64,000 nucleotides of DNA from contig LSRY02000058.1 in assembly GCA_001643675.2 (NCBI GenBank), positions 124,001-188,000 on the forward strand, given 5' to 3'. The position numbers and the translations under genes were made by a program. Positions 4,048-37,333 of this stretch are shown here, piece after piece (positions within the stretch are counted from its first letter, which is position 1; every line of letters starts with the position of its first letter). The DNA comes from Monocercomonoides exilis PA203. Taxonomy: Eukaryota > Protista > Preaxostyla. The notes under the pieces were generated by a model. The model was not told where the DNA came from. It saw nothing but the letters and a program-made list of their open reading frames with translations, and searched no databases.

Positions 4048-6265
4048 TCACATTTCTTTGCAGCAATTATCATCACGTTTAAAAAACGCTTTTATTGTCT
4101 CTGCAACATCTGATCCGACAGATTTGTCCACTTTTTTTGCTTTTTCTCTTTTCTTTTCTTTTCCCGTTTCCTTCTTTTTGTTCAACGACTCTATCAAACT
4201 CAGTCGAGATGACGAACATCTGCTTCTTTCTCCTGTAATTAGTTCCTGTTGAATAAGATCAAAGACTTTGAAGGGAGTTACTAATTTATTTGAAACCATC
4301 TCAGATTTGAATGACGATACGCCACGCAGATGGCACAATTGGCGTTTCCACACAGCTCCAACTGTGCAATGCTTATTCTTCAGATTTCGTTCTTGGAAGT
4401 CTGAAAACGTGAGTAAAGGAGATCCATCAACTGTCTGCCGGCAAGAAAGTGAATCCTCATTCACTCGAGAAGCATTTGAGTCAGTAAGCAACCGCGACAC
4501 TGATACAAGAAATGATATGCTGTCGTCAAGATGCAGACTGTTGTGCACTGTAAACCCATTTTCCGTCTGCAAGTTGCAAACAGCTGTTTTCAGCGATTGA
4601 GCAGACATGCATGGAGCATTACGATACCTGGAAGCGAAGGGAAAGGAAGTTTTCAGTTGTTGCAGTGGATGTGTTTCTGAAGATGCAGAAGACAAAGCGG
4701 ATGAAGGATTTGAACAGCATTTGTTTGATGATGCACCGAATAATGATGAGCTCAGCTTGCCTTCAATAAGATAAATAATCGAAGAGCACCCGCACGTCGA
4801 AAGCCGATGCCGCTGCTCGTCGAATCGCATGTCTCTGATCGAATGATGAAGATCCGCTACAGTTTTCCGCTCAACCACACAATCAAGAACTAGTTCTTCG
4901 CTGTATGCTTCGCAAAACTCTTCTGCTTCATTCTCGCTGTCCAAAAAGTTTTTTCCTCTTGACTTTCGCGCAATCCAAAGAAAATCCCCCACTGACAATG
5001 ACCTTCTCAGCGTCTTGATTCCTCTCAATCGTAATTCCTCCACAAATGCCTAAAAATAGAATAAAAATAATCATTAAACATTGTGTTCAATAATTATTAT
5101 CAATCGAAAACATTAAGTAAAATGAAAATAAAACGATCCAAATAACCGTTGATTCTTCATCGTAGCGCTTCTCTCGACTATCTGCAACAAGATATATCTC
5201 ATATTCGCCTATTAAAAGGGGTTTAATTGATGCATTTCTTCTCTGATCCTCTGCAAGTTTCTCTCTAACATTTTTTGAGAGTTTTAATTCTTTGAATTTT
5301 GGCTTCAAAGGAAGTGAAAGAGATTTCATCAATTTGCAATTCGTTTTTGACTGATCGTCATTCATCTTACTTGCTTGAATAGGCTTGTCTTCATCTATTT
5401 GGAAATCTTCTGTTTCAGTATCAATTTCCTTTTCTGTATATTCTTCCTCTTCGTCGTCTTCTATTAGCACTGGATCTGCTTGCATGTTATTGTAAGAAAC
5501 TGATGGAAGCATCCGCTTTGGTGTTGTTAATGGATTTAGACTTGATGAGTTAGAAAAGTGTGCTGCAGAACTGCTTTCACCGAAATATTTCCGTTTCAAA
5601 GCAGTTAATGTTAGATCATCAGAGCGTGTGGAAGGAGATTCATCAAAAGAACAGGGAAGTGTTTTCGATTTTTTGATTTTCGGAATTTCCATTACTTCAG
5701 GTTGTGAAAGAGTTTCATGAAGTGGACTCCATAAAGAGTCTCTGACTGGTGATTCCAAACAATTTAATGTCTTTAACTTTTTCCTATTAGCTGACATAGC
5801 GAAATGTCCATCATCTCCAGACAAATATAAATCAGTATCATCCTCGCCTGGAGTATCAAAAAATTGTAATGGAGAAGATATCGGAGTTTCACAAGAAAAA
5901 CAACTGTTAAAATCATTGTTACTAAAAATTGAAGAATGAATTGGGGTCACAAGATCAATAAAATTATTTTGCCATTTTGGTTTAAAAGCTTCATTCTTGT
6001 CTTTTCCATAATATTCACTTGATTGTTCATGTGAAAAGTACGGAGATAATTTATGATCAGCTTGGTGCAATGTTTCGATTTCTGTATGTTGTTTACAGTT
6101 TTGTAGTATAGTTGTGGATCTGTATCCGCAATATGCATTTTGATGTGAATTATCAAAATGGAAATCTGTTGCAAAATCTTGAAATAATAGATCGATTTTT
6201 TCGTTCGATAGTTCAATATTTTCATGTTTATGGTTGTCTATATTGCTTTCTTTTACATTGCTCAT
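4048..6265 (-). CDS. MUS81: MUS81-like ERCC4 structure-specific endonuclease (2 exons; intron 5050-5146)
   Basis: Motifs LVADSRE, LSVGDFLW, VVERKTVADL..SIRD.RF.EQ and YLIEG, plus a C-terminal HhH-like QLCHLRGVS. The GT-AG intron joins the two ORFs in phase 0 (EEST|AFVEEL). Confidence 0.9.
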
Positions 6266-6469
6266 AACGTTGTCCGATAATCCAAAAAAATAAAAATTTG
6301 AAAAAGAAATATAAAATATTTATGGGTCAATGTTAAGTTCATTTCAAATTAAAATTCATCTATTATAATGTATTTCGAACAAATTATACAAGAACTCTTA
6401 ATTTTGTTTGTCAGCTCCCAATACAATTTTCATCATTCAATTTTTTTGATCTGAATTTGTTAAACATTT

Positions 6470-8630
6470 CGTTCAGGAAAGTCAACCTTAACTGATTCTC
6501 TTATCGAAAAAGCTGGAATTATTGGACAACAACAAGCTGGCGATGCTAGAACGTTAGATACCCGAAAAGACGAACAGCAAAGGAGCATAGAAATCAAATC
6601 GACTGGAATTTCTTTGTATTACGAATTCCAAATTCATAACCCAAAAAAGAGAGAGACGGTTATCCTGTAAATGTTATTAACTCATCAGGGAACGTTGACT
6701 TTACAGGTGAAGCATCAGCCAATAATCATATGACAGATGGAGCAATTGTTGTCGTCAATTCAGTTGAAAGCATTTGCGTTCAGACTGAAACAGTATTGCG
6801 ATAGGAGCTTGCAGAGCGTGTGATGCCTGTTCTTATGATGAACAAAATTGACAGAATGATCCTTGAATTAAAATTGGATCCAGAAGAGGCTCATCAAAGA
6901 TTCCTACGGAAGATTGAGCATATCAATTAACTTTATACCATGCATCACAACGAAAAGCTGAGTGATGTTGAAGTAAATCTTGTTACATGAACGATTGCAT
7001 TTGGAATGAGTCTTAATTTACTCTGTTTCATTCGTCAACAATTTGCAGAATTTTATTCAAGAAAATAACACTCACCAAAAACAGATATATTGAAGAAACT
7101 CTAGGAAGATTAGTTTTTTTCAACCCTGACTCGGAGAAGTAGCAAAAAAATACCTGATGCGAAAGCAGACGAGGGAAAAAAGGTGAAAATTGGATTTGTG
7201 CAGTTTATCTTGGATCCTTTGCATCAAGTGATCAATTCTGTCCTGGCAAAGAACACGGAAAGATTGACAAAAGTTATAACTCAAATGAAAAACCATCTGA
7301 CAACTGAACAGGAAGCTATCACAGAAAGAAAGACACAGAAAGCCAAGGAACTAAGCTTGATGCTGTCGGCCAATATGCTTCTAGAAATAATCGTGTTAGT
7401 CAAGTCATTTCAAATCCAGCTTCAGAAAATCAAAAATTAAAAAGTTAGCGCAAAGGAACAATGGTTGCTGCTTCCACTGCTGCTGCTGCTGCTTTTTCCT
7501 TTCATAATTGCAATCCAGATGGATCATTGATGTTCTATTGTTTTAAAGATGGAATCTCCTGAAAAGATTGATTTCTATGCTTTTTAACGAATCTTCTCAG
7601 GAACTGTTAGAATTGGAATGAAGGTAAGAATGTTTTTTTAAAGGATAAAACTTTTGTCCACAGAAAGAAAGACGATTTGATTTATAAAGAACATACAAAG
7701 AAGTGTTCTGCTTGTTTACAGGCAGAAAGTTTGAGTCTGTAGAAGATATTCCTTTCTGGAAGCATATCAATGCTTTAATGGAGTTGGTTAATATCTAACA
7801 AAAAAATAATAATACAGGAGCAATTGAAGATAATGAAAATGCTAGCAGTAATGCCTCAATGAAGCTATCTATGTCTCTCGTTGTGTGTGCGATTATTCCA
7901 ATCGAGATGAAAGAAAATGAGAATTCTGCTGTTGTTTACAAAAGACCCAAAGCACCTGACAAAAATATATCCTGTTTGCGCATTTTCTTCAGCAGCAGAT
8001 TCAGATAAGAACATAACATAGGAGCTGGTGATCCGAAATTTGATGGATCCTTTGAAGGGTTCACACGATGATTTCGTATATTTCTATAAAAAACAAGCCT
8101 GTGAAATGAAGCAATATATTGGGGATGGCCTTCAATCCGTTGTTGTTATGCTTCAATTCAATTTTCTGTTAAACAGAGGAGCATCTGAATTTATCTAGAT
8201 TTAATTGATGTCATGATTTGTATGCTTGTATAATTCGAAAGTTTTTATGTTCAGCTAATTTTTCTAATTGCATGTTTGCTGCTGCTGATATTACTACCCC
8301 AAAAAAAATATGATATTATTTGAATCGACTTGCGCTTGAACAAGAGAAGATAATGAATTTAATGTAAAGAACCAAAAATTAGCTCATCTCTTGTTAAAGT
8401 TAAAGCTTTTCTGCTTATCTTTGAATTGCTTGAATTTACAAATGATCTCTGTTCACACATTTCTGGGTCAGTTTTTTCTGTGGAGTGTGTGTTTAGTCAT
8501 TGGTAACTTGTGCAAAAGAACAGCGAATGAGATTGGTTCACAATGGTATTCTACTGTTAGTGCAATCAGAAAACGCAAGGATTAACCAGATGATGCCTTA
8601 GGACCTGGGCTTTTTTACAAAGAACACTAT
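6470..8630 (+). pseudogene. EEF2: Translation elongation factor 2 pseudogene
   Basis: Readable fragments: [88 protein letters not shown]. Many stops and frameshifts, and shorter than a full EF-2. Confidence 0.9.
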
Positions 8631-15078: not shown

Positions 15079-16701
15079 ATGTCGAGCTCAACTCTTCTTA
15101 AAATTAAGGAGATCGAAGATGAAATGAAAAAGACCCAGAAAAACAAAGCAACCAACTTTCATCTTGGGTTGCTTAAAGCTAAATTGGCAAAATTGCGTCA
15201 AGAAGTCTTAGATCCAAGAAAAAGTGGTGGCGGTGCTCCTGGAGAAGGATTTGATGTCTCGAAAACTGGAGATGCACGTGTCGGATTAATTGGATTTCCT
15301 TCTGTTGGGAAATCGACATTGCTTAATGTCCTGACAAAGTTTGATCAATGAATATGACTCATTTTTAGAAATTTAAATTTTCAATAAACTTAGCACTTAT
15401 TCAGCTGTTGCCGCATATGAATTTACTACATTAACATGCGTTCCTGGTGTTATTCGATATAAGGGAGCAAAGATCCAAGTTTGTCATTTTTGTCATCAAT
15501 GATATGTACATAAATTGTTAATTTAGCTTCTTGATTTGCCAGGTATTATCGAAGGAGCTCGTCTGGGAAAGGGTCGTGGTAGACAAGTCATTGCTGTCGG
15601 AAGAACTTGCAGCTTGATCTTGATTGTTCTTGATGCATTGCAACCTCTTACACATAAGAGAATTATCGAAGTATTTTTTATTCTGTGAATTTTTTGAAAG
15701 AAACGTTTATTTTGTTATTTATTAGGGAGAATTGGAAGGATTTGGAATTAGATTGAACAAAAAGCCTCCTCAAATTGTTATGAAGAGAAAAGAAAAAGGA
15801 GGTATTTCTATTACAACCACTGTAAAGCTCACAAACTTGGATGAAGAAACAATCAGAGCGATTTGCGCTGAGTATAGAGTATGTGTTTTTCTCTTTTATC
15901 TTTTTTCTGCATTTTGATGATGTCATATTTTTTTTCACTTTTATAAAATAAAAAATTTTATTTGGAAATTACAACAAATTCTTAAAACTTCTTTTCAAAG
16001 ATCCGAAATGCTGACTTCAACTTCCATTGTGATGCAACTGCAGATGATCTGATTGATGTCATTGAAGGCAACAGAATTTACATTCCATGCATTTATGTGC
16101 TGAACAAGATTGACCAGCTTACCATTGAAGCCTTGGACATTCTTAGCAAAACACCTCATGTTTGCCCTATTTCTGCACATCTTCAGTGGAATCTGGATGA
16201 ACTTCTTGAGATGATGTGGAAATATTTGAACCTTCTTAGAATGTTTGCGTGATTTCTTTATTTAAACTTCAATTTATTTATTTATTTATTTATTTTTTTT
16301 TTATCACCCTTCAAATTTTTAATTAAAATGTAATATTTGTTCGAATTTGTTAATCATTACAGTTACACAAAGCCTCCGGGACAAGTTCCTGATTATACTG
16401 CTCCTGTTATTATGTCTGCTGAAAATCCCACAGTCGAACACTTCTGTAACAAAATTCATAAAGCAATTATGCCAGCTTTCAAATAGTGCGTCAATTTTTA
16501 TTTTTTTTTACTTGAATTTTTCATAATTAAATTATGTTTTATATTTCATTTTTTAATATTTATGTAATGTACAAAATCGTTTCTTATTTGAATAACAGTG
16601 CTATTGTGTGGGGCAAATCTGTGAAGCATAATCCTCAAAGAGTGGGAAAAGACCATGAACTTGCTGATGAAGATATCGTTCAAATTGTCAAGAATGGGTA
16701 A
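15079..16701 (+). CDS. DRG: Developmentally regulated GTP-binding protein (DRG, OBG family; multi-exon)
   Basis: [50 protein letters not shown], and TGS domain [16 protein letters not shown]1 versus DRG2 not resolved. Confidence 0.95.
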
Positions 16702-17308
16702 GTAGCAAACACTGCACATGGAATTCACTTCGCATTTATTATTCTTTCCCCCATTTAGACTTTTTTTCGCACAAACAAATTTATGAAAACAACAATTTTA
16801 TTATCTTCATCAACACATTTTGAAAAATAAAGCAATCTCTTTTTTTTTAAAAGAATGTCTGATTCATATCATTGGGAAAAAAGGAGAGAAAGAAACAAAT
16901 GCACGCTTCAAACGCAAGTGTGTATTTTAAGACCGCTCTATCATAACAATAATTGTTGATCTATTTCTATCGCAGAAATCTGAAGAAAGAGAAAATTTGT
17001 ATATTTTTTCAATTTCATTTCAATCATCTGCTGGAGGGAAGGGGAGATTTTTTATATTAATTTTTGTTGAGAATGTGTACAACAAGAGCAATTGAGCGAG
17101 AATGAATAACGCTTTAATATGAAAAAGGTATATGACGAACTGTTGCCAAACATCCAAACATAAAAGAGAGAGGTTTCCCAACGATTGTCAGAAGATGAAA
17201 TGTTTGGATGTATTACAATGTTCTTTGAAATACGTTTATAGACAGCATTTCACGTGTCAGTGATGTTTTTGTATTTAAAATGAAACATGAAAAAAACACA
17301 AAAATAAT

Positions 17309-17380
17309 TGCTCCTACCTGGATTCGAACCAGGATTACAGGATTCAGAGTCCTAGGTGCTAACCATTACACTATAAGAGC
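17309..17380 (-). tRNA. tRNA-Gln(CTG)
   Basis: 72-nt cloverleaf GCTCTTA..TAGGAGC-A with anticodon loop CT-CTG-AA, T-loop TTCGAAT and a downstream T-run. Confidence 0.95.
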
Positions 17381-17388
17381 TTCGCTTA

Positions 17389-19070
17389 GTCGGGGAGGAA
17401 ACCCGATCCAGGGAGGAAACCCGATCCATTTTTGATCAAAAACTTTGATTAATGTTTTTGATCAAAACAATGGAAAAGAAACCTTCTCTTGTCAGAATTA
17501 AAGCATCGAGTGATATGCGTTCTATTGGAGATGAGTTTATCAAGGCCTTGTATGCCTATGATATTTTGCAATATTCCGGTCGTGAAATCGAGGAAAGCGG
17601 ATTGATTTCGAGAGGATGTTTGGTGAGAGCCTTGAAAGCAAGAAAAGAAGGGAGAGATTTAAGAAAAAATGGAAGACCAACATTGTTTGCAAAAGCAGAA
17701 GAAGATGAGTTTGAAGAGAGGATTTTGGAGGACATTAGGATCGGAATTTATCACACGAAACGAAATATTATGCAAATGGTGTGAAAACAAGTCTTTTCAT
17801 CATTTTTTTTAACTTTTTTTGTTTTTCAGGCAAATGAATTATTGTGCAAAAAAAGAAGCGAAGGAGAAGAAATCAAAACTGTGGACAAGCATTGGGTTGA
17901 TCGTTTTTTGTTAAGACATAAAAAAATCAGCTTGCAAAAGCCGAAACCGCTGCCCATTGGAAGGGCTGCACATTCATGCAAAGCTGTATTAATTCCGTTT
18001 TTCGACGCCTACGAAAAATATTTCTTCAAAGTGAAACCTATTCCTCAATTGATGTTCAATATTGATGAAACATCAACAGTTTTTTCAGCTTTGTTAGAAG
18101 AACAGGTAGCTTCATCATCTTCTGTACCATCATCAATCACTCCAGAATCGTCTCTGCCAACCTCCACATCCATCATTGTAATGACTAGCGCCGATGGGTG
18201 CAGATACCTTGCACCAGTTCTCATTCCCTTCAAAACAATTCCAGCTGAATATCTTCTTGACACAACCTCAACTGAAGTTTTTATTCCAACCACGTCAGGC
18301 CATTTAACATCGTCATTATTTGCTGAATTGTTCAAAAAAATATTTTTGCCAGAAATAAACAAAAAACGGTGCGCCATAGGAAAGCAATATGATCATGCTA
18401 TGCTGGTCATGGATGGAGGTGTGGGTCATTTCAGCGATGAAATGAAAAAAGTTTGCAGAGACAATTTAATAGATTTGATAAAACTTCCTTCTCACACCTC
18501 TCATATTCTACAGCCCAACGACCAATTTGTGTTTGCGAGTTTAAAGAGGAATTTCAGCAAGGCAACGGAAAGCGGGAAGGCTACGACGGCTGCGGAGAGA
18601 AGAGAAGCATTTATTCGAACATTGAAAAATGGACTATCAGCTGCTAGTTACCCCTCAACGATAATTGCTTCGTGGAGGGTTTGCGGCTTATTTCCAATGG
18701 ACAAAAATGCAGTTTTGAATCGTTTGCCTGATGCCCCTCCTCAATGGGCTGCCTCACAAATAAATCCTGAAAGAGCACCAGAAGGTGCTTCATTTGGAGC
18801 AGTCTATTATTCATCTGACGATGATCATCAACTTTTTGCTTAAATTAAGACTTTTTCTCAATTTCAGTTAATAATACGTTTATTTGAATTTCTGTTTTTG
18901 AAAATCGTGCTTATTATTTTATTCAGTTTTTTTTTCTGTTAACAGTGCATTTTTCATATATTGAACATATTTTTTTCGTCAAAAAAACATAAAATTTCAT
19001 CAATTTATCTTAAATGTTTTTTTAGATCATTGGGTCGGGTTTCCTCCCTGGATCGGGTTTCCTCCCCGAC
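17389..19070 (+). mobile_element. pogo-like (Tc1/mariner, DD35D) DNA transposon, copy 1
   Basis: TIR GTCGGGGAGGAAACCCGATCCAGGGAGGAAACCCGA at both ends, flanked by TA, enclosing a transposase gene. Confidence 0.92.
17452..18843 (+). CDS. pogo-family DDE_1 transposase (intron 17779-17829; ~446 aa)
   Basis: HWVDRFLLRH (CENP-B-type HTH), NIDETS, VMDG, LPSHTSHILQPND, with 35 residues between the 2nd and 3rd Asp. In-frame splice QM|ANE. Confidence 0.9.
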
Positions 19071-19682
19071 TACTTAGTAGACGGTATTCGAATCTTGAGC
19101 AAAAAATAAATTTGATTTTATAACATAGATGTCAACCTCTTTTTTTGGAATTGATTCAATCAAATTGGTACTTTCTCAATCTCACTTGGTCCAAAATAGG
19201 AATTACGAAATGTTTGAAAAACTGATCTTATTATTTTTTTGTTTCTTATTTTATGTGATTCCTTCGTTTCGATTATTCACAAAACTTTGATATTTTATGC
19301 ATCGATATAAAATCCATGGTGTTTTGATCTGTTTTCAGCAAATTTTGAGTTTTTTTATAGTTCAAAAGGTTTGCATTTATTTTTAATTCTTTCACATGAT
19401 ATCCTTGCGATTGAGCATTTATATTAATTCTTATGATTATTTTCATATGTTTTAAGCTATTAACAGCTGTGACGTTTTATTTTAAATCAGGATCATTAAT
19501 AATACTTTTTCAACGTTTATTTCATATAAAACTCAAGGGGAAACAACGATTTTTGTTTCATTTCAATATTTTTCATAAATATTTTATGACATGCATACAA
19601 TAAGTTATATTTTTTATTCTCTTTTATTTTTTTTTTTAAAAAAAGGTGAATGATTGAAAAATAGAAATAATAAAAGAAAAAA

Positions 19683-21233
19683 CTAATTTCTTTGTTCCAA
19701 AAGAAGCCTTAAAGGACTTGGCGTAATTCTTTTCGCCTTTTCTGCTTCTGATGAACGTGGAGTTGAAGGAAAAGGAGATGAAGAAGATGCAGAAGAATGT
19801 TGGATTGATTTCCACTGACCTGGTAAACACCAGGCCATAGAATTATCATCTTCGTCACTATCATTTTCTTCCAAATCAATCCTTTTCGTTTCATTTCTAT
19901 CTTTTTCTTCTTTTTCTTCTTTTTCTTCTTTTTCTTCTTTTTCTTCTTTTTCTTCGATTTTTCGCTTTTCTTTCTTTTCTTCTTCACATTTCTTTTTCAG
20001 TGCGCCTTCCTTTTCATTCTGTGAAATATCTGAATAAAAAAAAGAGAAAATATAATGGTTGAAAGAGTTATCAAAAAAAATCAAATAAAAGATAATGAAT
20101 ATAAATATGGGTAAAGTAATGAATTATAAACTGTCTATTTGTGCCTTTAAAGTAGTTATTGTGGGTGTAATTGACAAGCTCGGATTCAATCTATTTTTCA
20201 ATTTTATTCGATATCTCTCATTCGCTATTTGTCTTGCTTTTTGTTTTTGTAAATGCTCCGTCCACAAGTTGTCCAAAATACGCTGATTTGCTTCCCCATC
20301 TGCTCTTGTCAATGGATTTCGTAATATATGAAAATTGGTCAAACAACAAGCCACACAGAAATAATCAGCAACCCTTTCAACCTCAAATGGCCACTGTCTT
20401 CTAAAAACTGAAAAGAGGGTCTTCAGACGACCGAAAAACCGTTCCACGATAACTCGATGAGTTGCTAGCTCTGGTGTTCCCACTGGTTTGGTGATAATTG
20501 CAGCCAAATCAGGTCTCGCTCCTATGTAAGCCGAATCAGCCAATATTTTTGCCCCTCCCAAACGATCCAAAAATTGAGGATAATGATCTTTAAAGACTGT
20601 AAAGTCATGAGTAGAGCCAGAATGAATTGCACTGATAGTACTTGCTGTCCCAACTTTGGGATTGACTCCAACCTCAGCTTTCACACAATATGTGTGATGT
20701 TTCCCGCTAAAAAACTTTTTCCCAAAGTCTAATCGACCTCCAGGTCTGTTGATGGGAATGATTGTACAGTCCAAAACAATTCCAACCTCCTTCATCACTT
20801 CAATCCTGTCAGGGCGAAATGTCAAAAACAAATCTGCTAATGGAGCTCTGATATGAGAAACAATACTGTGAAGAAGTCTGACAAGAGCGTTTTGAGTTTC
20901 ATAGAAAGGTGTGGATAATAAAAGTGTGAGTGTCGTTGAACCGTGATGAAGAAAAGTGAGTAACAAGAATAACTGTTCATCAAAATTGTTGATTGCTTTC
21001 AGTTTCCCTCGACGATGAGGAACTTCCATTTGAAGAATGTGAATGAGAAAATCAAATTCTTCTTTTGTGAATCCAGTAAGTCGAAAAAAAGAAGAAACAG
21101 GATCATCAAAATAGTCACAAGCTTTTTTGATGATGGAAATTTTTTCTTCCTTTTGAAGTGATTCATTCCGTTGTGGAATAATATTTCTCCTCTCCACACT
21201 CTTCAAAACGTCCAAAAAATTTGAATGTGACAT
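19683..21233 (-). CDS. PIF/Harbinger/ISL2EU-like (DDE_Tnp_4) transposase (probable intron 20030-20131)
   Basis: FRLTGFTKEEFDFL, LDCTIIPINRP, FSGKH, GSTHD, LADSAY, RVIVERFFGRLK..F. A GT-AG intron links it in phase to the charged ORF 19683-20029. Confidence 0.85.
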
Positions 21234-21434
21234 CAGAAAAAAATAAGAACAACTTTTGTTTGATCAAAACCAAATATTGAAATTTTGTTATTAATGATCA
21301 CGAAACCAACATTTGTGAATATGAATGTTATTGAATCAAATCAAATAAGTTTGATTCTATTCGGTTTTCAATCGATATAATTAAGTGTTTATATATCTTT
21401 TGCGGATGCATCAAATAAAATACAAAAGGTTCTA

Positions 21435-23064
21435 GTCGGGGAGGAAACCCGGGCCAGTGAGGAAACTCGGGCCTCACCCATAGTTTGATTTTTATGATCT
21501 CTTATGAAGAAAACAATTAATACTGCATCAAGACTTTGCGCAACTGCTGAAATTCGTGAGTTGGAAGATGCGCACTTGAAAGCAATTTACCTGCACAACA
21601 TTTTGAACATTCCTACAAGAGAAATCGCCCGAAGCCAGGTACTTTCTCGCTCTTCAGTGCAAAGAGCTCTCGCAGCGGAGAAAAAAAGGAATACGCCTGG
21701 AAAATGTGGAAGATCAACTCTAAAAGAGAATTCAGACAAACAGTATTTAACTACTGTGACAATTCACAATGCAGAGCATGGAACGTTTCATTCTAAAATG
21801 GAAATAACCCAAATGGTCTGGATTTCGCTAATTATTATTTGTTTTATTTTTTTTTTATTATTCAGGCAAATGATTTGTTAAAAACAAAGAGAAAAGAAGG
21901 AGATGAAGTAAAAACTGTGGACAAACATTGGGTGAAACGATTTTTGAAAAGGCACATTGAAATTAGTCTTGCAAAACCAATTTCTTTGCCTTTAGGGAGA
22001 GCAGCCCACACATCGAAATATACAATCGGTCCCTTCTTTGACGAAGTGAAGAAATTGTTTGAAAGCATCAACCCAATTCCACAGCTATTATTTAACTTAG
22101 ATGAAACTTCAACATTTTCATCCAAACAACAACCTGAACTTGTCGCTTCTTCGTCATCAACACCTTCCACGATTGTTCCTGAAGTTCACTTGCCAAATTC
22201 CACAACAATTATCTTCATGACAAGTGCAGACGGGTGCCGATATTTAACACCCATATTAATTCCATTTTCGACGCTTCCAGAAGAATACAAGCTAGGAACA
22301 ACTTCGCATGAAGTGTTCATTCCTTCTTTATCTGGTCATGTTACATCTGCAATTTTTTTGGACTTGTTCAAGAAGTGCGTAATTACAGAAATTAGAAATA
22401 AAAGAATTGCAGTCGGAAAGAAAGAAAAGCATGCAGTCCTCATCATGGACGGTGGAGTGGGGCATTTCCAGCCGGAAATTCTTCAATTATGTAAGGATAA
22501 TTTAATTGATCTAATAAAACTTCCATCGCATACTTCACACATTTTGCAGCCTAATGATCAATACATTTTCGCAAGTATGAAAAGGGTATTTGGAAAAGCC
22601 AAAGAAAGCGGAACAACTACCTCAGCATCTCCTAAAAGAGAGGTTTTTGTTGAAATCCTGAGAAATGGACTTGCAGCTGCTTCGTATCCTGAAACAATAA
22701 AATCATCTTGGAAAAGCACAGGGTTGTGGCCATTTAACCCAGAGAAGATTTTATCTAATCTTCCTGACAATCCTCCAGAATGGGCATTATCTGGAGTTGA
22801 ACCCAAATCTGCACCTATCGGATCATCATTTGGAGCTGTTTATTATTCTTCTGATGATTTATCGGATTTGTTCTGAAAACAATTAATTATTAATTCCATA
22901 TCACTGAAGCTTTTTTGGAATGCACTTCTTTTATATAATAATGAAATATCTTAATGTTAACTGTTTTTCTTTGTTTCTATTCATGAAATGAAATACAAAC
23001 ACTAAAAAAAGTGAAAATAAAAAATTCCCATTTTAATACCAATGGCCCGGGTTTCCTCCCCGAC
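21435..23064 (+). mobile_element. pogo-like DD35D DNA transposon, copy 2 (diverged subfamily)
   Basis: TIR GTCGGGGAGGAAACCCGGGCCA at both ends, flanked by TA. Confidence 0.92.
21504..22876 (+). CDS. pogo-family DDE_1 transposase (intron 21816-21865; ~440 aa)
   Basis: NLDETS, IMDG, LPSHTSHILQPND. The intron is at the same QM|AN position as in copy 1. Confidence 0.9.
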
Positions 23065-23317
23065 TACTTAAAGCAGAATTTTATCTTTATCAGATATTGA
23101 AAATTACTATTTTAATAAAAAAATAGCTTTTACAAACGAAATTTCCTTTATCATCATTAATTTTGTTTTTTTTTAAATAAAACTTCTTATTTGCATTTCA
23201 AATTAAATATAAGATATTTCATTCATCATAAACATTATTAATATTTTTTTAAACAAGCATTCATTCGAATTATGGTGAAATATAATTCTATTTGGAAATT
23301 TTCGGCAAAAGGAGATG

Positions 23318-23759
23318 ATAGGGGAACACGAATTTTTCAAATTCTTTATATAAAACGGAAATAATATTGTATAAGAATCATTTATAAATTAATTAAAATT
23401 TGAGATCATCAATCATAAATATTTCTTTTTTTCAATCAAAACATTTTGATCTGACCCAGTATTTTTTTAATTATTTGGGTTAAAATTCTATAATAATCTC
23501 CACATTAATAGATTGGTTTAGGTTCTAGGGTTTGCGTAACAGATCTTGGGTTTAGGGTTTGTTCCCGTTCTTCTTTATAAGGTTAGCACTCAAAAATAAC
23601 ATGAAAATTTATTGATCTATCCCATAAATACTAAGAATCCTTGATTATTATTTATCAAAAAAATTAGATGATCTCAAATTTTTATTAACTAAAAAATGAT
23701 TCTTATACTATATAGAATTCGTTAATAATAAAAAATTAGAAAAATTCGTGTTCCCCTAT
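23318..23759. repeat. Foldback/MITE-like unit (mirror copy 25557-25998)
   Basis: Perfect 21-bp IR ATAGGGGAACACGAATTTTTC, with imperfect pairing extending ~90 bp inward and ~50-80 bp outward. Confidence 0.7.
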
Positions 23760-24053
23760 AATATACATTTGCCAAATTTTCAAAAATTCATTTTCAAAAT
23801 TTTGAGTTTAATCTCAAAAATATACACCATTTATTATTCGAAATTGGAAAATTTACACCAAAAAATTCTAATTCGAAAAAAATAATTCAAATTCGGAATT
23901 AATAATTCAATTTCGAAATTTATTATTTCGATTTAGAAAAATAATAATTCTTTGATTTGTGGAATGAATAACTTATGTTTTGCAGTAAATTTTCTCTTAA
24001 TTTTTATCTCATTTGTTCACCTAGTTTATCATCATTTGAAAAATGATGCATTT

Positions 24054-24298
24054 GGTGATTATTTTTGAAATCATAACTTTTTTCGGGGTAATGATTTCTC
24101 CAAAATTGTTTGATATTGGGAAAAGATTTTGTATTCAAATGCTAAAATTATCACAACTGTTTCAAAAACAAATGTTTTCACTTCAATGAAAATGAAGATA
24201 TTTTGAATAAGCCTATACATGTTTTTTTGTTGATATTCAAAATGAATTCTAAAACGAAAATATTTGATTGAGATAATATGATTTCAAAAATAATCACC
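24054..24298. repeat. MITE-like unit with a perfect 22-bp inverted repeat (mirrored at ~25017-25261)
   Basis: GGTGATTATTTTTGAAATCATA at 24054-24075 and its reverse complement at 24277-24298. Confidence 0.65.
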
Positions 24299-26253
24299 CA
24301 ATTTTCATTAAAAAATTCATTTATTTTAATTGAAAAAATTTTTTAATTTAATGTTTATTCAAAAATTTTTTGAAATTCATTTTCATATGAAAAATTGATG
24401 CTTTTCTTATTTTCACCAAAGAAACTATTAAATTATTGTGAAAAACATTATCGTCTTTTGTTATTCAAAAAATGTGATTGAAAATTTCCTCTTTTCATTA
24501 GGTTATTCAAAAGAATGAATTGTTTTAACAATTAATTTTCATAAGAGTGTTGATTTTTGTAAATAAAAAATAAACTTCAAAAAAAAATAAAAAGTCGTCT
24601 GAATTTTGTTGAAAAGTTCCTTTTGTTTAATTTTCAAATAAAATAAAAACATAGTATTTCGATCAAATTTCTGTTACCAGTCACCATATTTTACTGTTAT
24701 GAAAACAAAATTCAGACGACTTTTTATTTTTTTTTTGAAGTTTATTTTTTATTTACAAAAATCAACACTCTTATGAAAATTAATTGTTAAAACAATTCAT
24801 TCTTTTGAATAACCTAATGAAAAGAGGAAATTTTCAATCACATTTTTTGAATAACAAAAGACGATAATGTTTTTCACAATAATTTAATAGTTTCTTTGGT
24901 GAAAATAAGAAAAGCATCAATTTTTCATATGAAAATGAATTTCAAAAAATTTTTGAATAAACATTAAATTAAAAAATTTTTTCAATTAAAATAAATGAAT
25001 TTTTTAATGAAAATTGGGTGATTATTTTTGAAATCATATTATCTCAATCAAATATTTTCGTTTTAGAATTCATTTTGAATATCAACAAAAAAACATGTAT
25101 AGGCTTATTCAAAATATCTTCATTTTCATTGAAGTGAAAACATTTGTTTTTGAAACAGTTGTGATAATTTTAGCATTTGAATACAAAATCTTTTCCCAAT
25201 ATCAAACAATTTTGGAGAAATCATTACCCCGAAAAAAGTTATGATTTCAAAAATAATCACCCAAATGCATCATTTTTCAAATGATGATAAACTAGGTGAA
25301 CAAATGAGATAAAAATTAAGAGAAAATTTACTGCAAAACATAAGTTATTCATTCCACAAATCAAAGAATTATTATTTTTCTAAATCGAAATAATAAATTT
25401 CGAAATTGAATTATTAATTCCGAATTTGAATTATTTTTTTCGAATTAGAATTTTTTGGTGTAAATTTTCCAATTTCGAATAATAAATGGTGTATATTTTT
25501 GAGATTAAACTCAAAATTTTGAAAATGAATTTTTGAAAATTTGGCAAATGTATATTATAGGGGAACACGAATTTTTCTAATTTTTTATTATTAACGAATT
25601 CTATATAGTATAAGAATCATTTTTTAGTTAATAAAAATTTGAGATCATCTAATTTTTTTGATAAATAATAATCAAGGATTCTTAGTATTTATGGGATAGA
25701 TCAATAAATTTTCATGTTATTTTTGAGTGCTAACCTTATAAAGAAGAACGGGAACAAACCCTAAACCCAAGATCTGTTACGCAAACCCTAGAACCTAAAC
25801 CAATCTATTAATGTGGAGATTATTATAGAATTTTAACCCAAATAATTAAAAAAATACTGGGTCAGATCAAAATGTTTTGATTGAAAAAAAGAAATATTTA
25901 TGATTGATGATCTCAAATTTTAATTAATTTATAAATGATTCTTATACAATATTATTTCCGTTTTATATAAAGAATTTGAAAAATTCGTGTTCCCCTATCA
26001 TCTCCTTTTGCCGAAAATTTCCAAATAGAATTATATTTCACCATAATTCGAATGAATGCTTGTTTAAAAAAATATTAATAATGTTTATGATGAATGAAAT
26101 ATCTTATATTTAATTTGAAATGCAAATAAGAAGTTTTATTTAAAAAAAAACAAAATTAATGATGATAAAGGAAATTTCGTTTGTAAAAGCTATTTTTTTA
26201 TTAAAATAGTAATTTTCAATATCTGATAAAGATAAAATTTTGCTTTAAGCGAA

Positions 26254-26325
26254 GCTCTTATAGTGTAATGGTTAGCACCTAGGACTCTGAATCCTGTAAT
26301 CCTGGTTCGAATCCAGGTAGGAGCA
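26254..26325 (+). tRNA. tRNA-Gln(CTG), second identical copy
   Basis: Exact reverse complement of 17309-17380. Confidence 0.95.
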
Positions 26326-27188
26326 ATTATTTTTGTGTTTTTTTCATGTTTCATTTTAAATACAAAAACATCACTGACACGTGAAATGCTGTCTATAAAC
26401 GTATTTCAAAGAACATTGTAATACATCCAAACATTTCATCTTCTGACAATCGTTGGGAAACCTCTCTCTTTTATGTTTGGATGTTTGGCAACAGTTCGTC
26501 ATATACCTTTTTCATATTAAAGCGTTATTCATTCTCGCTCAATTGCTCTTGTTGTACACATTCTCAACAAAAATTAATATAAAAAATCTCCCCTTCCCTC
26601 CAGCAGATGATTGAAATGAAATTGAAAAAATATACAAATTTTCTCTTTCTTCAGATTTCTGCGATAGAAATAGATCAACAATTATTGTTATGATAGAGCG
26701 GTCTTAAAATACACACTTGCGTTTGAAGCGTGCATTTGTTTCTTTCTCTCCTTTTTTCCCAATGATATGAATCAGACATTCTTTTAAAAAAAAAAAGGGA
26801 TATTTTATGAAAGAAAATGTTGATTCTTTATTTTCAGAACATAATTCTTCTTATCTAATGCTAATGTCTCCGAAAAGTTAATTATGATAATAGATACATA
26901 TAATATTATCAAAGACGATAGAATTGCGTTCAAAAACAGAAAATGAATGATTTAAACATTCTTTTTTAATTACTGATAATTTTCAATCATAAAAGGCAAG
27001 CCGATAAAATAAAAATATAACACGAGGAAAATGCAACAAACATGCTAATTACAGATATTTATCCAGTCATATCGCATGAAAATTTCCAATGATATCACAA
27101 CAAATCCAAAAATCTCTTCATTATCAAAAAAAAAAAAAAAAAAAATAAAATAAAATAAAATATAATAAAATAAAATAAAAATATTTTT

Positions 27189-30058
27189 TCACTTCATATG
27201 CGATTTACTTGAAGCACGATGCATAAGAAACTGCTTAGTGAGCTCAGGATCTGCAGGTGAAGGCACACCTCGTTCATGGCCTCTTGTGAAGAACCAGCTT
27301 TTCAACTTCTTCATCAGATTTTTGCTTGTTTCGTCAAAGACCCAGAGATAACGACGATTTGGATGAGTTTTGTTGAAAAGCATTTCTTGAATTGAGGAAA
27401 AAGTTTGTTTAAATATTTTCTTTCGCTTCAAAGAAAACTCAATTTTTTCTTTTCTCACGATTTGAGAACTTAAAAATCGGGGATATTGCAGTAATGGTGT
27501 AACAATACAACATTGTAATGATGATGACTGATTCAATGAAAGAGATTCTAAGGCCTTTAATTCTTGAGCTGTTGAAGAATTATCAGAAATATTAGAAACA
27601 TCAGAAAATAAAAACGATTCATTGCTTGCATCAGAAGAATTGCAAAGTTGATAGTAACTGTCATTGGATTTATGGTCTTTATTTTCAATGTTCCGTAATT
27701 GAATATCAAAAATGTTATGAGAAATAACAAATGAAGCTTCAACTGATTCATCCTCAAGTTCAGAAAAATTCAGAAACTGCTGGTAAAATTGTTGTTCATG
27801 TTTATGTGCCGTTTTATTCGAAACAGAAGAAGGTAGAGAATTTGAATAACAACAGTGCTTTCCAACAATTGAGCCATGCAAATGTTTCCTTTGAGATTTA
27901 CCTGATTCAATGGAATTTACATCAGAATGAATAAAAGGAACCTTTTCAGATTTCATTGGAACGAACACATCTGATGTACATCGCAATTCACTGAAATAAT
28001 TCCTATCTTTTTGATTGTTATCAGAAAATGACTTATTTTCAAATGACAAGCATTTCATCGAGGGATAACCTTGAAAACAGTCAGAAACAGATAAACTTCC
28101 TTTTTCTTTAGAATTGCACAGAGAAAAATGACAATTCGCTTTAGAATTTTCTTCTGTTCGCATTTTCTTTCTTTTCAAGTTCTTTTCCAGAAACTTCTGC
28201 TGCTCCCTTTCAAAATACAAATCAACCACACTTGTTTCGCTTCTTCTTCGCTGCTCTGCAATTTTTGCTTCCAACTTTCTAATTCTGTTCTTTATCTCCA
28301 TTTTTGCCTCCTCCTTCAATCGAATCTCAATATCATCACCACCACCATCACTACCATCATAATCATCGTAATCACAATCATTCAACCGTCTCTTCAGTTC
28401 CTCTATCTCCTCTTCATTCTCCAACACCCCCTCTTTCTCTTTGGCTGTGACCCACAATTCTGCCTCATCCCACATTTGCTGCTCTTTTTCTCCTTCAATC
28501 CATTCTTTCCTTACCCATTCCCCAAACATCTTCCAGTGCGCCTTCGCTTCTTGTATCTCGCTCTCAATCCTTTTTATTAGCCTTCTGCGCTCTTTTTCTT
28601 CATTCTTTCGGATCTTTTCTGCTTCTGCTTCTTCTTCTTCTTTTCCTTCTTCTTCATATCCTTCTTCCTTCACTTTGCCTTTAACCCCAATCTCATCATT
28701 GATCATCCCTTCATTCACAACGTGTATCAACTGACTTCCTTTCACTTGCTTTTCAAGACGCCTCAGAGAAGCATCTCTCCACCTTTTTTCCATCTCTTTC
28801 CTCTTCTTTTCTAACAACCCGCTGATTTTCCTTCCATCAACATCGACTTCGATGTCGCAACAGACAGAAGTTGGCTGAGAATCAAGTGGCTTCCAGTGAG
28901 AAAAGAATGCTGATATCTGATCAGTGTCAGTAAAATCACCATTTGCAATATCTGATATTTGAACTGATGTGAAGTCAAGTCTTTGTGAATGAATAGAATT
29001 ATCATCAGCATCCGCAAAATAACCTTCTGCTTTGTTGTCTTGTACATCTCCTGTGCTAACCGCTAATCTGCTTCGATCTTTAATAGTTTCATTGTTTGAC
29101 TGACCTTCTTTCAAATGCAACTGGGAAGAAAGGATTGTTGAGCATTCAGCTATCATATCAAGATTGGTCGCGTTGTAAAAGCGATAAGGAATTTTGGACT
29201 GCATCCCGGAAGAAACAAACTGCGGAGGAGGTTCCATTGATCTTTCTGTAAATGCAATTTTATTGCTAATGTCTTGCTTTTTAGATCCTTTGTCTTGTGA
29301 CACTGAAGAAGCAGATTTCTCTGTTTCTTTTGACATTTTAAGTTGTGCAAGATAATTTTCATTTTTATGAAAAGAATCATCGCTTTCGCGAAATTTGTTA
29401 TTTCCGTTTTCTAAATATGATTTTGATTCGTCAAGAATTTGAGAACGCTTATCAGGTGTCGTTTTGTAATCAGTTTTACTTTCCAATGTCACTATTGAAT
29501 AAGAAGATGACTCAAAGTTATCTCTCAATAACTTTTCAGTCTTTGATTGCGAATTATCTATCAGGCTTATGCTGCACTTCTGAAGTTTGTTGTTAAAATT
29601 AGAAGCATTATTTTTAACCAAAAATGGAGAAGAAGATGATGACAGCACAGTACTTTTGCAAAGATCAAATTTTGATGATTCGCTGCAAGTACATTTTGAT
29701 TTATTTGATATTGTTTCTAGAGATTGATAAACAGACTGCATATAAGGATGCAAAGAAGAAGCAAATTTGTCTCCCATCAATATTGAATCCATTTTTTCAT
29801 ATTCATTCTTCAAATTATTTGTTGATGGTTTTTCTTTTGCTTCTTTGATTGGAAGAAGTGCAACATCTCGGATTTTTGAGTGCTCTGAACTTGAAATTTC
29901 AATTTCATTTGAGCAATTATGTACCGATGTTTGCAAGAAATCCTATGAAATAAGAACCTTAAAATCAAAGAAAAAATAGAATTATTAAAAGCCAAACATT
30001 TTCTTGTAAAACAGTCGTTGAAGATAGCTCGAAACTCATAATTAGAAAACTGATTCAT
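27189..30058 (-). CDS. Hypothetical protein with a central Glu/Lys coiled coil
   Basis: 915-codon ORF with a probable splice acceptor at 29943. First and last exons are unresolved. Confidence 0.65.
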
Positions 30059-33067: not shown

Positions 33068-35783
33068 TCATTGCTCTTCTTGTTTTTCATGAGAACAATA
33101 ATGCTCATGCTCATGTTCAGGTTTCTTCTTCTTCTTCTTCTTCTTTTTCTTCCTCCTCATCTTCCTCTCTTTTTCTTTCTCTTCCTCTTCCTCCTCTTCT
33201 TTTTCACCTTTCAAATAATAATTCTTCATTTGTATTTGATTATCTGATGATAAAATAAAAACAGAAGGATTTCGAATAGATTGACTCAACAATGAAAGAT
33301 CATTGGAAGAATAAACAGGAATGAAAGAAGAAGAAGAAGGAAGACAAGAAGGGTTAGAAGGAAGATTAAGAGGAAGATTAAGAGGAAGATTAAGAGGAAG
33401 AGAAGGAGGAAGAGAAGGAGGAAGAGAAGGAGGATTAAGAAGATTAGAAGAAATTGAAGAACTTGAAGGAAGAGAAGAATTAGAAGAATTAGAAGAATTA
33501 GAAGGAAGACAAGAAGGGTTAGAAGGAAGATTAAGAGGAAGAGGCAACAAGAGAGGGGAAGATGAAGGAAGAGGAAGAGGAAGAGGAAGAGGAAGAGGAA
33601 GAGGAAGAGGAAGAGGAAATGCATAGGAAACATTGGAAGGAGGAAGAAGAGAAGAAGAAGAAGAAGAAAGAGAAGAAGAAGAAAGAGAAGAAGAAGAAGA
33701 ATTTAAAGAATTAACAGAAGAAGAAGAGAAAGAACTTGTAGAAGCAAACAAACCAAAATTCTGAGGAGGAAGAAGAAGAGGAGAAGGAGCAATAGAAAAT
33801 TGAAAGGGAATATTTTTTGATTGAATAGCAGGAGGAGAATAGGAAAATGAGAAAGAAAGAGGAGAAACAGAAGAAGAAGAAGAAGAAGAGGATGAGGAAC
33901 AGGAAGAGGATGAGGAAGAGGAAGGAGAAGAGGAAGAGGAAGAAGAAGAAGAAGAAGGTGAAGGAAAATAAGGAGAAAATTGAATTTTCAGTTGTTCTTT
34001 TTCTTCTTCTTCCTTCTTCTTCTTCTTCTCCTCTTCTTTTTCTTCTTTTTGCTGTTGAATAGAAGAAAGAAGAGATTTTGAATTTAAATAAGAATTTGAA
34101 TGAGGAAGAGAAGAAGAAGAAGAAGAAGAAGAAAGAGGATGCGGGTGAACAAAATAAGGGAGAGAAGAAGGAAGAATAAGAGGGACATGAAAAGAAGAAG
34201 AAGAAGAGGAGGAGGAAGAAGAGGAAAGTGAAGATGAAGAAGATGAAGAGGAATATGAAGGAGAAGAAGAAAGAGAAGAAGAAGAATTCGGTGTTTCTGG
34301 TATTAAAGATGTATTAATAGCAGGCGAAATCAGATTTTCGATCTCTTTTCCATCCAAAATTTTCGTTCTTTTATTTCTTTTTGGGTTTTCCCTTATTTTT
34401 CTTTTCTTTATTTTTTCTTTCTTCAAATTATTTCTTCTTCTTCTTCTTCTTCTTTCTCTCTCTTCTTCCCTTTCCCCTTCTTCTTCTCTTTCTTCTTCTT
34501 CTTCTTCTTCCTCCTCTTCCTCTTCTTCGTTATTCTCCCTCTCTTCTTCACTGTCTTCTTCCAAATATTCACTCATTTCTGTCTCATTCTCAAAAATTGG
34601 ATGTATTTCAGGTGTTTTTATAGCAAATTCATTGAAAATTGGCAACTCTTGTGTCAAAATAAGGTTATTTGATGGAGTTTTCATTGAAAATGAGTTTAAT
34701 TCTTCTTTTTCATAGTCTTTTTCTTCTTTTTCAGTTATTTTATCTTTGATTTCTTCTTCTTCTGTTCTTTCAGATTCTTTTATTTCTTCTTCTTCTTCAT
34801 TTCTTTCTCTTTCTAAAAATACAATTTTTGGTAAAGGTGTTTGCAATGTTGGTGATTGGGTTAGTTTTTCATTGTTTTCTTCTTCTTTTTCTCTTTCTTT
34901 TTCTCTTTCTTCTTTCTCTCTTTCCTCTTCCTTTTTATCCTTTTCTATTTCTTCTTCTTCTTCTTCTTTGAATAACATGACATTGTTCATGCCATTATTC
35001 TTATCTTTCTGTTCATGATTTTCTTCTTCTTCTTCTTCTCTTTCTTCTTTTTCTTTTCTTTCTTTTTCCTTTTCTTCTTTTTCGATTTCATTACCTTTAT
35101 CATCTTGTTTATTAGATTTTTCTCTTTCAATATTTGAAATATGATTGCTTATTCTTTGTTTATCTGTTTTATCGATTGCATTGGAAGAGGAAGAGGAAGA
35201 AGATGAAGAGGAAGAAGGATAAATAGAAAGAGGAGGAGAAGAAAAGGAGGAGGAGGAAGAAGAAGAAAAGGAAGAAGAAGAAGAAGAGGAAGAAGAAGAG
35301 GAAGAGGAAGAGGAAGAAGAAAAACAATTAGAAGGAGAAGAAGAAATGACAATAGAAGAAGAAAGAAATTTCTTAGAAGGAATAAAAGGAGAAGCCTTTG
35401 AAGACAAAGAAGAAGAGAAAGAAGAAGAAGAAGAAGAAGAATTTTTATGATGAAGAAGAAGATGAGGTATGAAATTGGTTGGGAATGAAGAAGAAGAAGA
35501 AGAATTTGATGAATTTTGAGGAAAAGAAGGAAAACAAGAAGAAGAAGAAGAAGAAGGAAAATTAGAAGAAGAAGAAGAAGAAGAAGAAGAAGAAGAAGAA
35601 GAAGAAGGAAAACAAAAGGAAGAAGAAGAAGAAGAAGAAAGAGAAGAAGAGGGATAAGAAGGAAAGTTGCATGTTGAATATATTGGAGGTAATGATGAAT
35701 TGCAATTATTATTATTATTATTATTATAATCGGTGTAAATGAATGAGTTTATAGGACAAAGAGAAGAAGAAGAAAAGGAAGAG

Positions 35784-35818
<35 letters not shown>

Positions 35819-37333
35819 AGAGGAGGAGGAAGAAGAAGAAGAAGAATTTGAAGAAAGAGAAGAAGGGTAAATAGAAGGAGAAAGATAACAAGAAGAAGAG
35901 GAAAGAGAAGAAGAAGGATTAAAAGAAGAAGATGAAGAAGAAGAAGATGATGATGCTAATAGAAAAGAAGAAGAAGAAACAATTGAAGAAGAAGGAGAAG
36001 AAGAAGGAGAAGGAGAAGGAGAAGAGGAATAAGAAGGAATTGAAGAACACAAAGAAATATTTGGTTTATTTGATAGAAATGACAAAGAATTTGAAGAAGG
36101 AGAAGGAGAAGAGGAAGAAGAAGAAGAAGGAGAAGAAGAAGAAGGAGAAGAAGGAGAAGAAGAGGGAGAAGAAGAAGAAAGAGGAGAAGAAGAAAAAAAG
36201 GAAGATGAAGAAAAAGAGGATGAAGAAGAAGAATTTAAAGAATTTAAAGAAAAAAAAGAAGGAGGAGAAGAAGAAATTAAGGAAGAAGAGGAAGAAGAGG
36301 AAGAAGAGGAAGAGGAAGAATTAAAAGAAGAATTTAACGAAGAAGAAGAAGAATTAAAAGAGGAAGAAGAAGAAGAAAAATTAAAAGAAGAAGAAGAAGA
36401 AGAAGAAGAAGAAGAAGAAGAAGAAACAGAATCACCATAATATTTGGAATTATTTTGAAGCAAGAAAAAATCAGAAAAATGCTGAAAAGACGAATTTTGA
36501 GAAAGAAATATATCATTTTTGGGTTTGATAGAAGAAGAAGAAGAAGAATGAGAAGAAGAAGAAGAAGAGGAAGAAAGAGAAGAAGAAGAAGAAGAAGAAG
36601 AAGAAGAAGAAGAAGAAGAAGAAGAAGAAGAAGAAGAAGAAGAAGAAGAAGAAGAAGAAGAAGAAGAAGAAGAAGAAGAAGAAGAGGAAGAAAGAGAAGA
36701 AGAAGAAGAAGAAGAAGAAGAAGAAGAAGAAGAAGAAGAAGAAGAAGAAGAAGAAGAAGAAGAAGAAGAAGAAGAAGAAGAAGAAGAAGAAGAATAACTA
36801 AAAAGATGAGATGGAGTGGCAGTGTAATGTTCAAAGGATGAAGCTAAATCAGGTGAAGAAAGAGGAGAAGAAGAGAAAGAAGAAGAAAGAGAAGAAGAAG
36901 AAGAAGAAGAAGAAGAAGAAGAAGAAGAAGAAGAAGAAGAGGAGGAGGAGGAGGAGGAGGAGGAAGAGGAGGAAGAAATAGAAAATTCATCTGAAGAATG
37001 AAGAGAACGAGATGAAAAGCTAAAATAATCGTTTTCCTTCTGTTTCAGTTGAATCTGATGGTTTTCTCTGGGATGAGGAAGAGGAAGAGGAAGAGGAGGG
37101 GGAAGAGGAGGGGGAAGAAGAGGAGGAAGGGAATTACCATTACCATTACTATTATTATTATTGTTATCTTCATCGTTATCAGAAGCTATGGAAAGAATGT
37201 GTAAGAGAAGAAAATAAAAAGAAATTTTTTTATAATCGAATCAAGAGAAAAAAATAATGTTGAAAAAATAAATCAAAAATAAAAATAAAAATAAAAATAA
37301 AAATAAAAATAAAAACAAAACAAAGAAACAAAG

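Follow-up and report, generated by a model that had tools for sequence, protein, structure and literature searches.

The palindromes of mammalian sex chromosomes measure tens of kilobases to megabases, are demonstrably old and are maintained by gene conversion. A different route to a palindrome is the folding back of DNA on itself, of which palindrome formation in the ribosomal DNA of Tetrahymena is a related example. When yeast DNA breaks near natural short inverted repeats, the end folds back and anneals to itself, the proofreading activity of DNA polymerase delta (Pol delta) trims the flap, and fill-in yields an inverted duplication, a route that is suppressed by Sae2 and the Mre11 nuclease (PMC10622511); a fold-back route to inverted duplications has also been described in humans (PMC3907307). 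Inverted repeats also flank the centromeres of Komagataella phaffii, which occur exactly once per chromosome, have a unique core of ~1 kb that binds Cse4 and are transcription cold spots (PMC5010909). Transfer RNA (tRNA) genes are targeted by mobile elements such as Ty3 and the Dictyostelium elements TRE5-A and DGLT-A (PMC5006619). The locus described here is a palindrome with two tRNA-Gln(CTG) genes in the mitochondrion-less protist Monocercomonoides exilis PA203. It lies on contig C56 (LSRY02000058.1), in a window of 64,000 nucleotides (C56:124001-188000) from whose first base the positions at this locus are counted. It is probably an interstitial inverted duplication of recent origin, by which a 2.1-kb intergenic segment carrying tRNA-Gln(CTG) was doubled, seeded at a hairpin-forming miniature inverted-repeat transposable element (MITE) and followed by the stacking of tRNA-targeted transposons. 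Genome searches were run against the assembly of 82,301,135 bases in 101 contigs, which was built from Oxford Nanopore Technologies (ONT) reads with Canu, Nanopolish and ten rounds of Pilon and is reported as ~82.3 Mbp in 101 contigs, for an estimated 40-50 chromosomes (PMC8767320).

An earlier note on this DNA, made from its letters alone, had described two near-identical inverted arms around a 93-bp spacer, and a repeat search, self-BLAST and an alignment of the arms all bear this out. The arms (16837-17388 plus 23067-24610 on the left, 24704-26797 on the right) are ~2,092 and 2,094 nt long and 99.8-100% identical. Repeat search and self-BLAST return three collinear inverted-repeat blocks, which form one palindrome centred at 24657 with a total length of 4.3 kb without its transposon stack. 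The palindrome and the elements nested in it are as follows.

16837-17388 (552 nt): left arm, outer segment; starts in a T-run and is 100% complementary to 26246-26797
23067-24610 (1,544 nt): left arm, inner segment; complementary to 24704-26249, with one substitution and two one-base indels
23290-23787, mirrored at 25529-26026: MITE of ~475-498 bp with 121-nt terminal repeats (paired repeats; arm positions 819-1291)
24054-24301, mirrored at 25014-25266: MITE of ~250 bp (arm positions ~290-545)
24597-24717: half copy of a ~245-bp hairpin MITE, consisting of a 14-nt terminus, one 93-nt arm (the spacer) and the mirror of the terminus
24611-24703 (93 nt): spacer, non-palindromic
24704-26797 (2,094 nt): right arm, continuous (repeat search, self-BLAST, genome search and arm alignment)

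In the global alignment, the arms differ by one substitution (G at 23076, A at 26240) and two one-base indels. The alignment also shows a T-run of unequal length at the outer edge, and a CTTA of which the left arm has two copies and the right arm one. No target-site duplication is found at the outer ends of the palindrome in the flank sequences or the arm alignment. When the right arm is compared with the whole assembly, the full arm matches only on C56, and arm DNA outside the nested MITEs is single-copy; the earlier note had proposed this search as a measure of copy number. The small foldbacks that it had seen within the arms are the MITEs. The longer of these has at least 20 genomic copies at 85-99% identity, and the shorter has dozens at 75-89%. 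Both are present in both arms, and the MITEs therefore predate the duplication.

The turn-around falls within a third element, the hairpin MITE. Alignment of the centre to eleven full copies of this element identifies the spacer as one complete arm, from terminus to stem top, at 89-90% identity; full copies elsewhere are two-armed, and the second arm is absent at the palindrome centre. The 14 bases ahead of the spacer are the terminal sequence of the element, and the duplicated arms extend 14-17 nt into this terminus. The right arm opens with the exact reverse complement of the left terminus. Because the two termini of full copies are only imperfectly complementary, the right-hand "terminus" appears to have been newly copied from the left one. 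At the junction, the two sides have four bases (AACA/TGTT) in common. The first 40 nt of the right arm have a weak similarity (~69%) to the loop of the element, but this is AT-rich sequence and the match is not relied on. A genome search with 24580-24750 gave 852 candidates at first look, and the scored copies typically show a match on one strand followed directly by a shorter match on the opposite strand, the signature of a ~245-bp hairpin. A hairpin-MITE centre was verified for two palindromes only, that on C56 (half copy) and a 10-kb palindrome on C25, which turns on a complete copy of the same family. The loop of the element also holds a motif that resembles the element's own terminus. The family may have originated as a head-to-head dimer of a ~120-bp unit, and the C56 centre resembles such a monomer. 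The outer junctions of palindromes may likewise tend to fall near hairpin MITEs.

Two features of the locus are those of a fold-back product. It is a segment of otherwise single-copy DNA that is present twice, in opposite orientations, between unique flanks and without a target-site duplication, and it turns around at a pre-existing hairpin-prone sequence, since the spacer and the inner 14-17 nt are hairpin MITE. A very recent inverted duplication had been only an alternative in the earlier note; the single-copy arms, the lone substitution and the unique flanks make it the favoured explanation here. Such a duplication could have begun when the DNA broke, or a replication fork stalled, at the hairpin MITE, perhaps at its tip or close to it, and a 3' end was left. 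By fold-back priming, this end would anneal to a short complementary sequence in the terminus of the MITE, or else it would switch template; DNA synthesis would copy ~2.1 kb of the flank backwards, and the new strand would rejoin the chromosome in the T-run. Two replicative template switches could give the same product, and the half MITE could also be what a deletion at a central break left of a MITE that was once complete. By analogy with yeast, Pol delta-primed, break-dependent synthesis may be envisaged at C56. As the locus is interstitial and has both flanks, a second junction is needed, here in the T-run, and not a dicentric intermediate. Later, three independent cut-and-paste transposons entered one arm, all of them at a single position that is 8 bp upstream of its tRNA gene. 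The process that formed the palindrome has probably produced many others in this genome, including most of the close inverted tRNA pairs.

The genome encodes Mre11 (C34:391148-391327, within an open frame of 594 aa). A six-frame genome search gave no Sae2/CtIP C-terminal domain at the Pfam cut-off (best 17 bits), which is a weak lead in the case of so short and divergent a domain. If real, the absence could help explain frequent fold-back duplications. Origin-dependent inverted-repeat amplification was also considered and rejected; it yields triplications (PMC4689423), as opposed to the two-copy palindrome at this locus.

Several observations weigh against the proposed duplication or its youth. 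By the canonical hairpin model the centre should hold an entire MITE, but half of one is present, so that an extra step (a break at the tip or a central deletion) is needed. The missing half was sought at both outer flanks, where local alignments were no better than shuffled controls; with no remnant found there, either arm could be the original. Three insertions set against one substitution imply either fast stacking or arm-to-arm gene conversion, and "young" is thus not proven. The short-read evidence consists of assembled contigs (Logan, short unitigs) from four runs of one sample; those that bridge the empty site and the right outer boundary come from runs of 2016 and 2022. None of the contigs listed crosses the spacer, so the turn-around is seen solely in the ONT assembly. 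Ten Pilon rounds could also have inflated the identity of the arms (PMC8767320), although other palindromes in the same assembly keep 0.5-2.3% divergence despite Pilon.

Each arm carries an outward-facing tRNA-Gln(CTG) gene 472 nt from its outer edge, in agreement with the ~470 bp of the earlier note, and T-runs lie downstream of both copies, those of the left copy fitting an RNA polymerase III (Pol III) terminator. The left arm is split by a 5,678-bp stack (17389-23066) of three abutting DNA transposons, a pogo, a Harbinger and a second pogo, with intact transposase open reading frames (ORFs). It lies upstream of the left tRNA gene at a distance of 8 bp, and the right arm keeps an uninterrupted empty site. 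The 10-kb interval had been taken to consist of the two arms alone; the arms stand, but the remainder is this insertion. The gap between the DRG-type GTPase gene on the left and the next gene on the right is free of host protein genes, and the stack in it encodes transposases. The components are as follows.

17309-17380, minus strand: tRNA-Gln(CTG), left copy (ARAGORN; Rfam RF00005, 65.8 bits)
17385-17388 and again 23067-23070: CTTA, a 4-nt duplication bracketing the whole stack (sequence reading and arm alignment)
17389-19072, plus strand: pogo-type transposon A (Pfam DDE_1 and HTH_Tnp_Tc5; ~60-nt terminal inverted repeats), with a transposase of two exons, 17452-17784 and 17842-18843
19075-21434, minus strand: PIF/Harbinger-type transposon B (Pfam DDE_Tnp_4), with a transposase ORF at 20124-21233 and a second ORF at 19683-20084, both on the minus strand
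21435-23066, plus strand: pogo-type transposon C, diverged from A (Pfam DDE_1 and HTH_Tnp_Tc5), with ORFs at 21504-21881 and 21839-22876
26246-26249: single CTTA, the empty site in the right arm
26254-26325, plus strand: tRNA-Gln(CTG), right copy (ARAGORN, Rfam), with the empty transposon target site 8 bp upstream

Positions 1-1687, 1687-4048 and 4045-5674 of the stack, used as a query, match separate copies elsewhere as separate units, which indicates three insertions and not one composite element. Separate copies of pogo A (94-99% identity) are found on C34, C22, C16 and C11, those of Harbinger B (89-99%) on C34, C8, C22, C12, C33, C1 and C21, and the closest other copies of pogo C are 91% identical. 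The empty site in the mirror arm shows that the stack arrived after the duplication. The pogo A copy on C16 ends 9 nt from another tRNA gene, in the same geometry and orientation. Independent elements that abut ~5-15 bp upstream of a tRNA gene, as a tRNA-targeted stack should have them, are thus present. Elsewhere, at C22:114480-119149, two Harbinger B copies stand in tandem with a 4-nt overlap, as a head-to-tail stack.

The assembly contains eight tRNA-Gln matches, with anticodons assigned by ARAGORN. Four are CTG, two of them at C56, and four are TTG, in two inverted pairs, so that inverted pairs hold 2/4 CTG and 4/4 TTG genes found. A pair was defined, among 63 scored tRNA matches, as two matches with the same score, inverted and less than 20 kb apart. 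All six inverted tRNA pairs lie in extended inverted repeats. Two further palindromes, on C25 and C71, surfaced through mirror-symmetric matches of a MITE from the C56 arm. Arm divergence in the following list counts substitutions only.

C56: tRNA-Gln(CTG); arms of 2.1 kb; 93-nt spacer; divergence 0.05%
C24: tRNA-Ile; arms of 2.0 kb; 110-nt spacer; divergence 0.15%
C37: tRNA-Arg; arms of 4.0 kb; divergence 0.52%
C63: tRNA-Glu and tRNA-Asn; arms of at least 3.2 kb, one interrupted by insertions; 985-nt spacer; divergence 0-0.46%
C23: tRNA-Gln(TTG); arms of 4.2 kb, 11.9 kb apart; divergence 1.0%
C7: tRNA-Gln(TTG), remnant pair; arms of 0.29 kb, 4.1 kb apart; divergence 8.7%
C25: no tRNA; arms of at least 4.9 kb; divergence 2.3%
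C71: no tRNA; arms of 3.3 kb; divergence 0.09%

Two narrow probes, in which 40 of ~1,400-1,900 MITE candidates and 63 tRNA candidates were scored, thus gave eight large inverted repeats on eight different contigs. Extrapolation from this small scored fraction suggests ~100 or more such structures, against 40-50 chromosomes. Arms range from 0.3 to 5 kb, spacers from 48 nt to 12 kb and divergence from 0.05 to 8.7%. This gradation looks like repeated birth followed by decay, with C56 at the young end.

Some further observations concern these and similar structures. The tRNA genes of the C37 (L024:4548-4617) and C23 palindromes have in common a transposon-like terminus with a ~40-nt hairpin, which ends 17-25 bp upstream of the tRNA gene. 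It is present in both arms, so the stack there predates those duplications. Just beyond the C37 palindrome, 38 nt from its outer boundary, is a full hairpin-MITE copy (L024:688-932). On C80, hairpin-MITE matches of equal score at 90452-90709 and 103638-103895 are mirror-symmetric and 13 kb apart, which suggests another large inverted repeat. On C40 (L022), a 2.1-kb tandem array (5888-7994) is located between 283-nt inverted repeats (3460-3742 and 8055-8337) of 98.9% identity.

The near-identity of the C56 arms may be silent on age if the palindrome is old and its arms are kept identical by recurrent gene conversion between them. Three separate insertions in one arm, at a time when the arms differ by one substitution, would fit such a history, as would the position of that substitution (23076/26240), which is 6-10 nt from the insertion, where heterology should end conversion tracts. 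However, divergence in the other palindromes is graded to 2.3%, and to 8.7% in the remnant pair, which argues that homogenisation is not generally efficient. Conversion tracts across the site would also tend to erase or copy the 5.7-kb insertion, and tRNA genes in this genome seem often to acquire stacks of cut-and-paste elements. An old, converted palindrome is therefore possible but rather doubtful. The palindromic shape and the nested MITEs might also bring to mind a foldback or long-terminal-repeat transposon that carries a tRNA gene. With arm DNA that, outside the MITEs, occurs nowhere else in the genome, and outer ends without a target-site duplication, such an element is ruled out for practical purposes; the many dispersed copies with target-site duplications by which the earlier note would have recognised one are not seen, and the arm is unique to C56. 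An assembly artefact, either a fold-back chimeric ONT read or a mis-join, has in its favour that the assembly is ONT/Canu (PMC8767320) and that the spacer is left uncrossed by the short-read contigs listed. Yet the palindrome is internal to the contig and is bordered to left and right, within the window, by >35 kb of unique sequence each, its 93-nt spacer is a defined MITE fragment and not a zero-length junction, and the 5.7-kb insertion is in one arm only. Both states of the junction upstream of the tRNA gene, empty and filled, are seen in contigs from separate libraries: two records bridge the empty site, and one joins the pogo terminal repeat to tRNA-proximal sequence, with a loose end at 26246. 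Another crosses the outer boundary on the right and reaches 33 nt into the arm, and others stop precisely at 26795/26797 and 24610, as is expected of contigs that run up to the edge of a repeat. The assembly foldback that the earlier note had allowed for is, on this evidence, highly improbable.

The headline of that note was a candidate centromere or insulated chromatin domain, and some points do favour an inverted repeat that is bounded by tRNA genes and acts as a small regional centromere, an insulated domain or a replication origin. The geometry resembles that of K. phaffii, where 2-kb near-identical repeats are unrelated between chromosomes (PMC5010909), each large palindrome verified is on a different contig, and the locus occupies a gene-free gap between convergent genes. 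However, an inverted-repeat centromere of the K. phaffii, C. tropicalis or S. pombe type should have a unique core of at least ~1 kb, whereas here the core measures 93 nt, less than the length of a nucleosome, and is part of a MITE that occurs hundreds of times in the genome. The base composition is that of the surroundings: the arms have a GC content of 21-33%, the adjoining unique intergenic DNA 21-29% and other intergenic parts of the window ~22%. The AT-richness of the arms is thus ordinary, and the insertion is at 35% GC, so the description of the interval as very AT-rich does not hold. The arms carry what appear from their sequence to be functional Pol III genes. Palindromes on at least seven other contigs vary widely in arm length, spacer length and arm divergence, and, by extrapolation, such structures seem to exceed the 40-50 chromosomes in number (PMC8767320). 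The centromere reading is consequently very unlikely, and there is an equally slight chance that the tRNA-bearing palindromes as a class are elements used by the cell rather than accidents of repair, whether as small inverted-repeat centromeres or as replication origins with tRNA boundaries, in a genome of 40-50 small chromosomes whose centromeres are undescribed.

The genes on either side of the palindrome are as follows.

15079-16701, plus strand: DRG-type GTPase gene of several exons, left flank (ORF translations give the DRG N-terminus and the C-terminal end)
27189-29936, minus strand: ORF of 915 aa, right flank, without a Pfam match

The DRG stop codon is 136 nt ahead of the left arm and that of the 915-aa ORF is 391 nt from the right arm; given their strands, the two genes converge on the palindrome. 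At a permissive threshold, Rfam gave no matches in the interval except the two tRNAs, and Tandem Repeats Finder returned only short AT-rich arrays and pogo terminal subrepeats. Further along the window, positions 35001-37000 have a GC skew of 0.71-0.88 and an AT skew of 0.38-0.73 and overlap a 1,131-aa ORF (33068-36463, minus strand). This strand asymmetry is probably a low-complexity coding repeat.

In Dictyostelium discoideum, a sizeable share of the tRNA genes is reported to occur as close identical pairs. In M. exilis, mirror duplication is a route by which tRNA genes are doubled, and the C56 pair makes up half of the four tRNA-Gln(CTG) genes. The C56 locus is a compact and readable example of DNA duplication in a mitochondrion-less protist, in which the mirror-image copy turns around at a hairpin transposon. 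With its filled and empty sites in one molecule, it carries an internal control that shows a tRNA gene before and after targeted insertion of DNA transposons. The repair mechanism behind it is already known from yeast and human cells, but a genome-wide description would be new, as the published genome paper is silent on palindromes and tRNA genes; the words tRNA, centromere, palindrome and inverted do not occur in its main text (PMC8767320).

Compared with the systems introduced at the outset, the C56 palindrome resembles those of mammalian sex chromosomes in its near-identical arms, short spacer and mirror-image gene copies, but it is far shorter, and in its case conversion is no more than possible. 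It has in common with the centromeres of K. phaffii ~2-kb near-identical inverted repeats, sequence unrelated between loci and a gene-free setting, and differs in its MITE-fragment core, the tRNA genes in its arms and the many similar structures in the genome (PMC5010909). As with Ty3, TRE5-A and DGLT-A, insertion took place a few bases upstream of a tRNA gene and the same site was reused, but those elements are retrotransposons (PMC5006619), whereas the stack at C56 is made of cut-and-paste pogo and Harbinger elements. A further likeness is to the fold-back duplications of yeast mre11/sae2 mutants (PMC10622511) and of humans (PMC3907307), which also have two inverted copies of a flank around a short unduplicated spacer with hairpin-prone bounds, and arms that are identical at birth. 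Unlike those, the C56 duplication is interstitial, has only 2.1 kb per arm and keeps both unique flanks, and its seed is half of a transposon hairpin.

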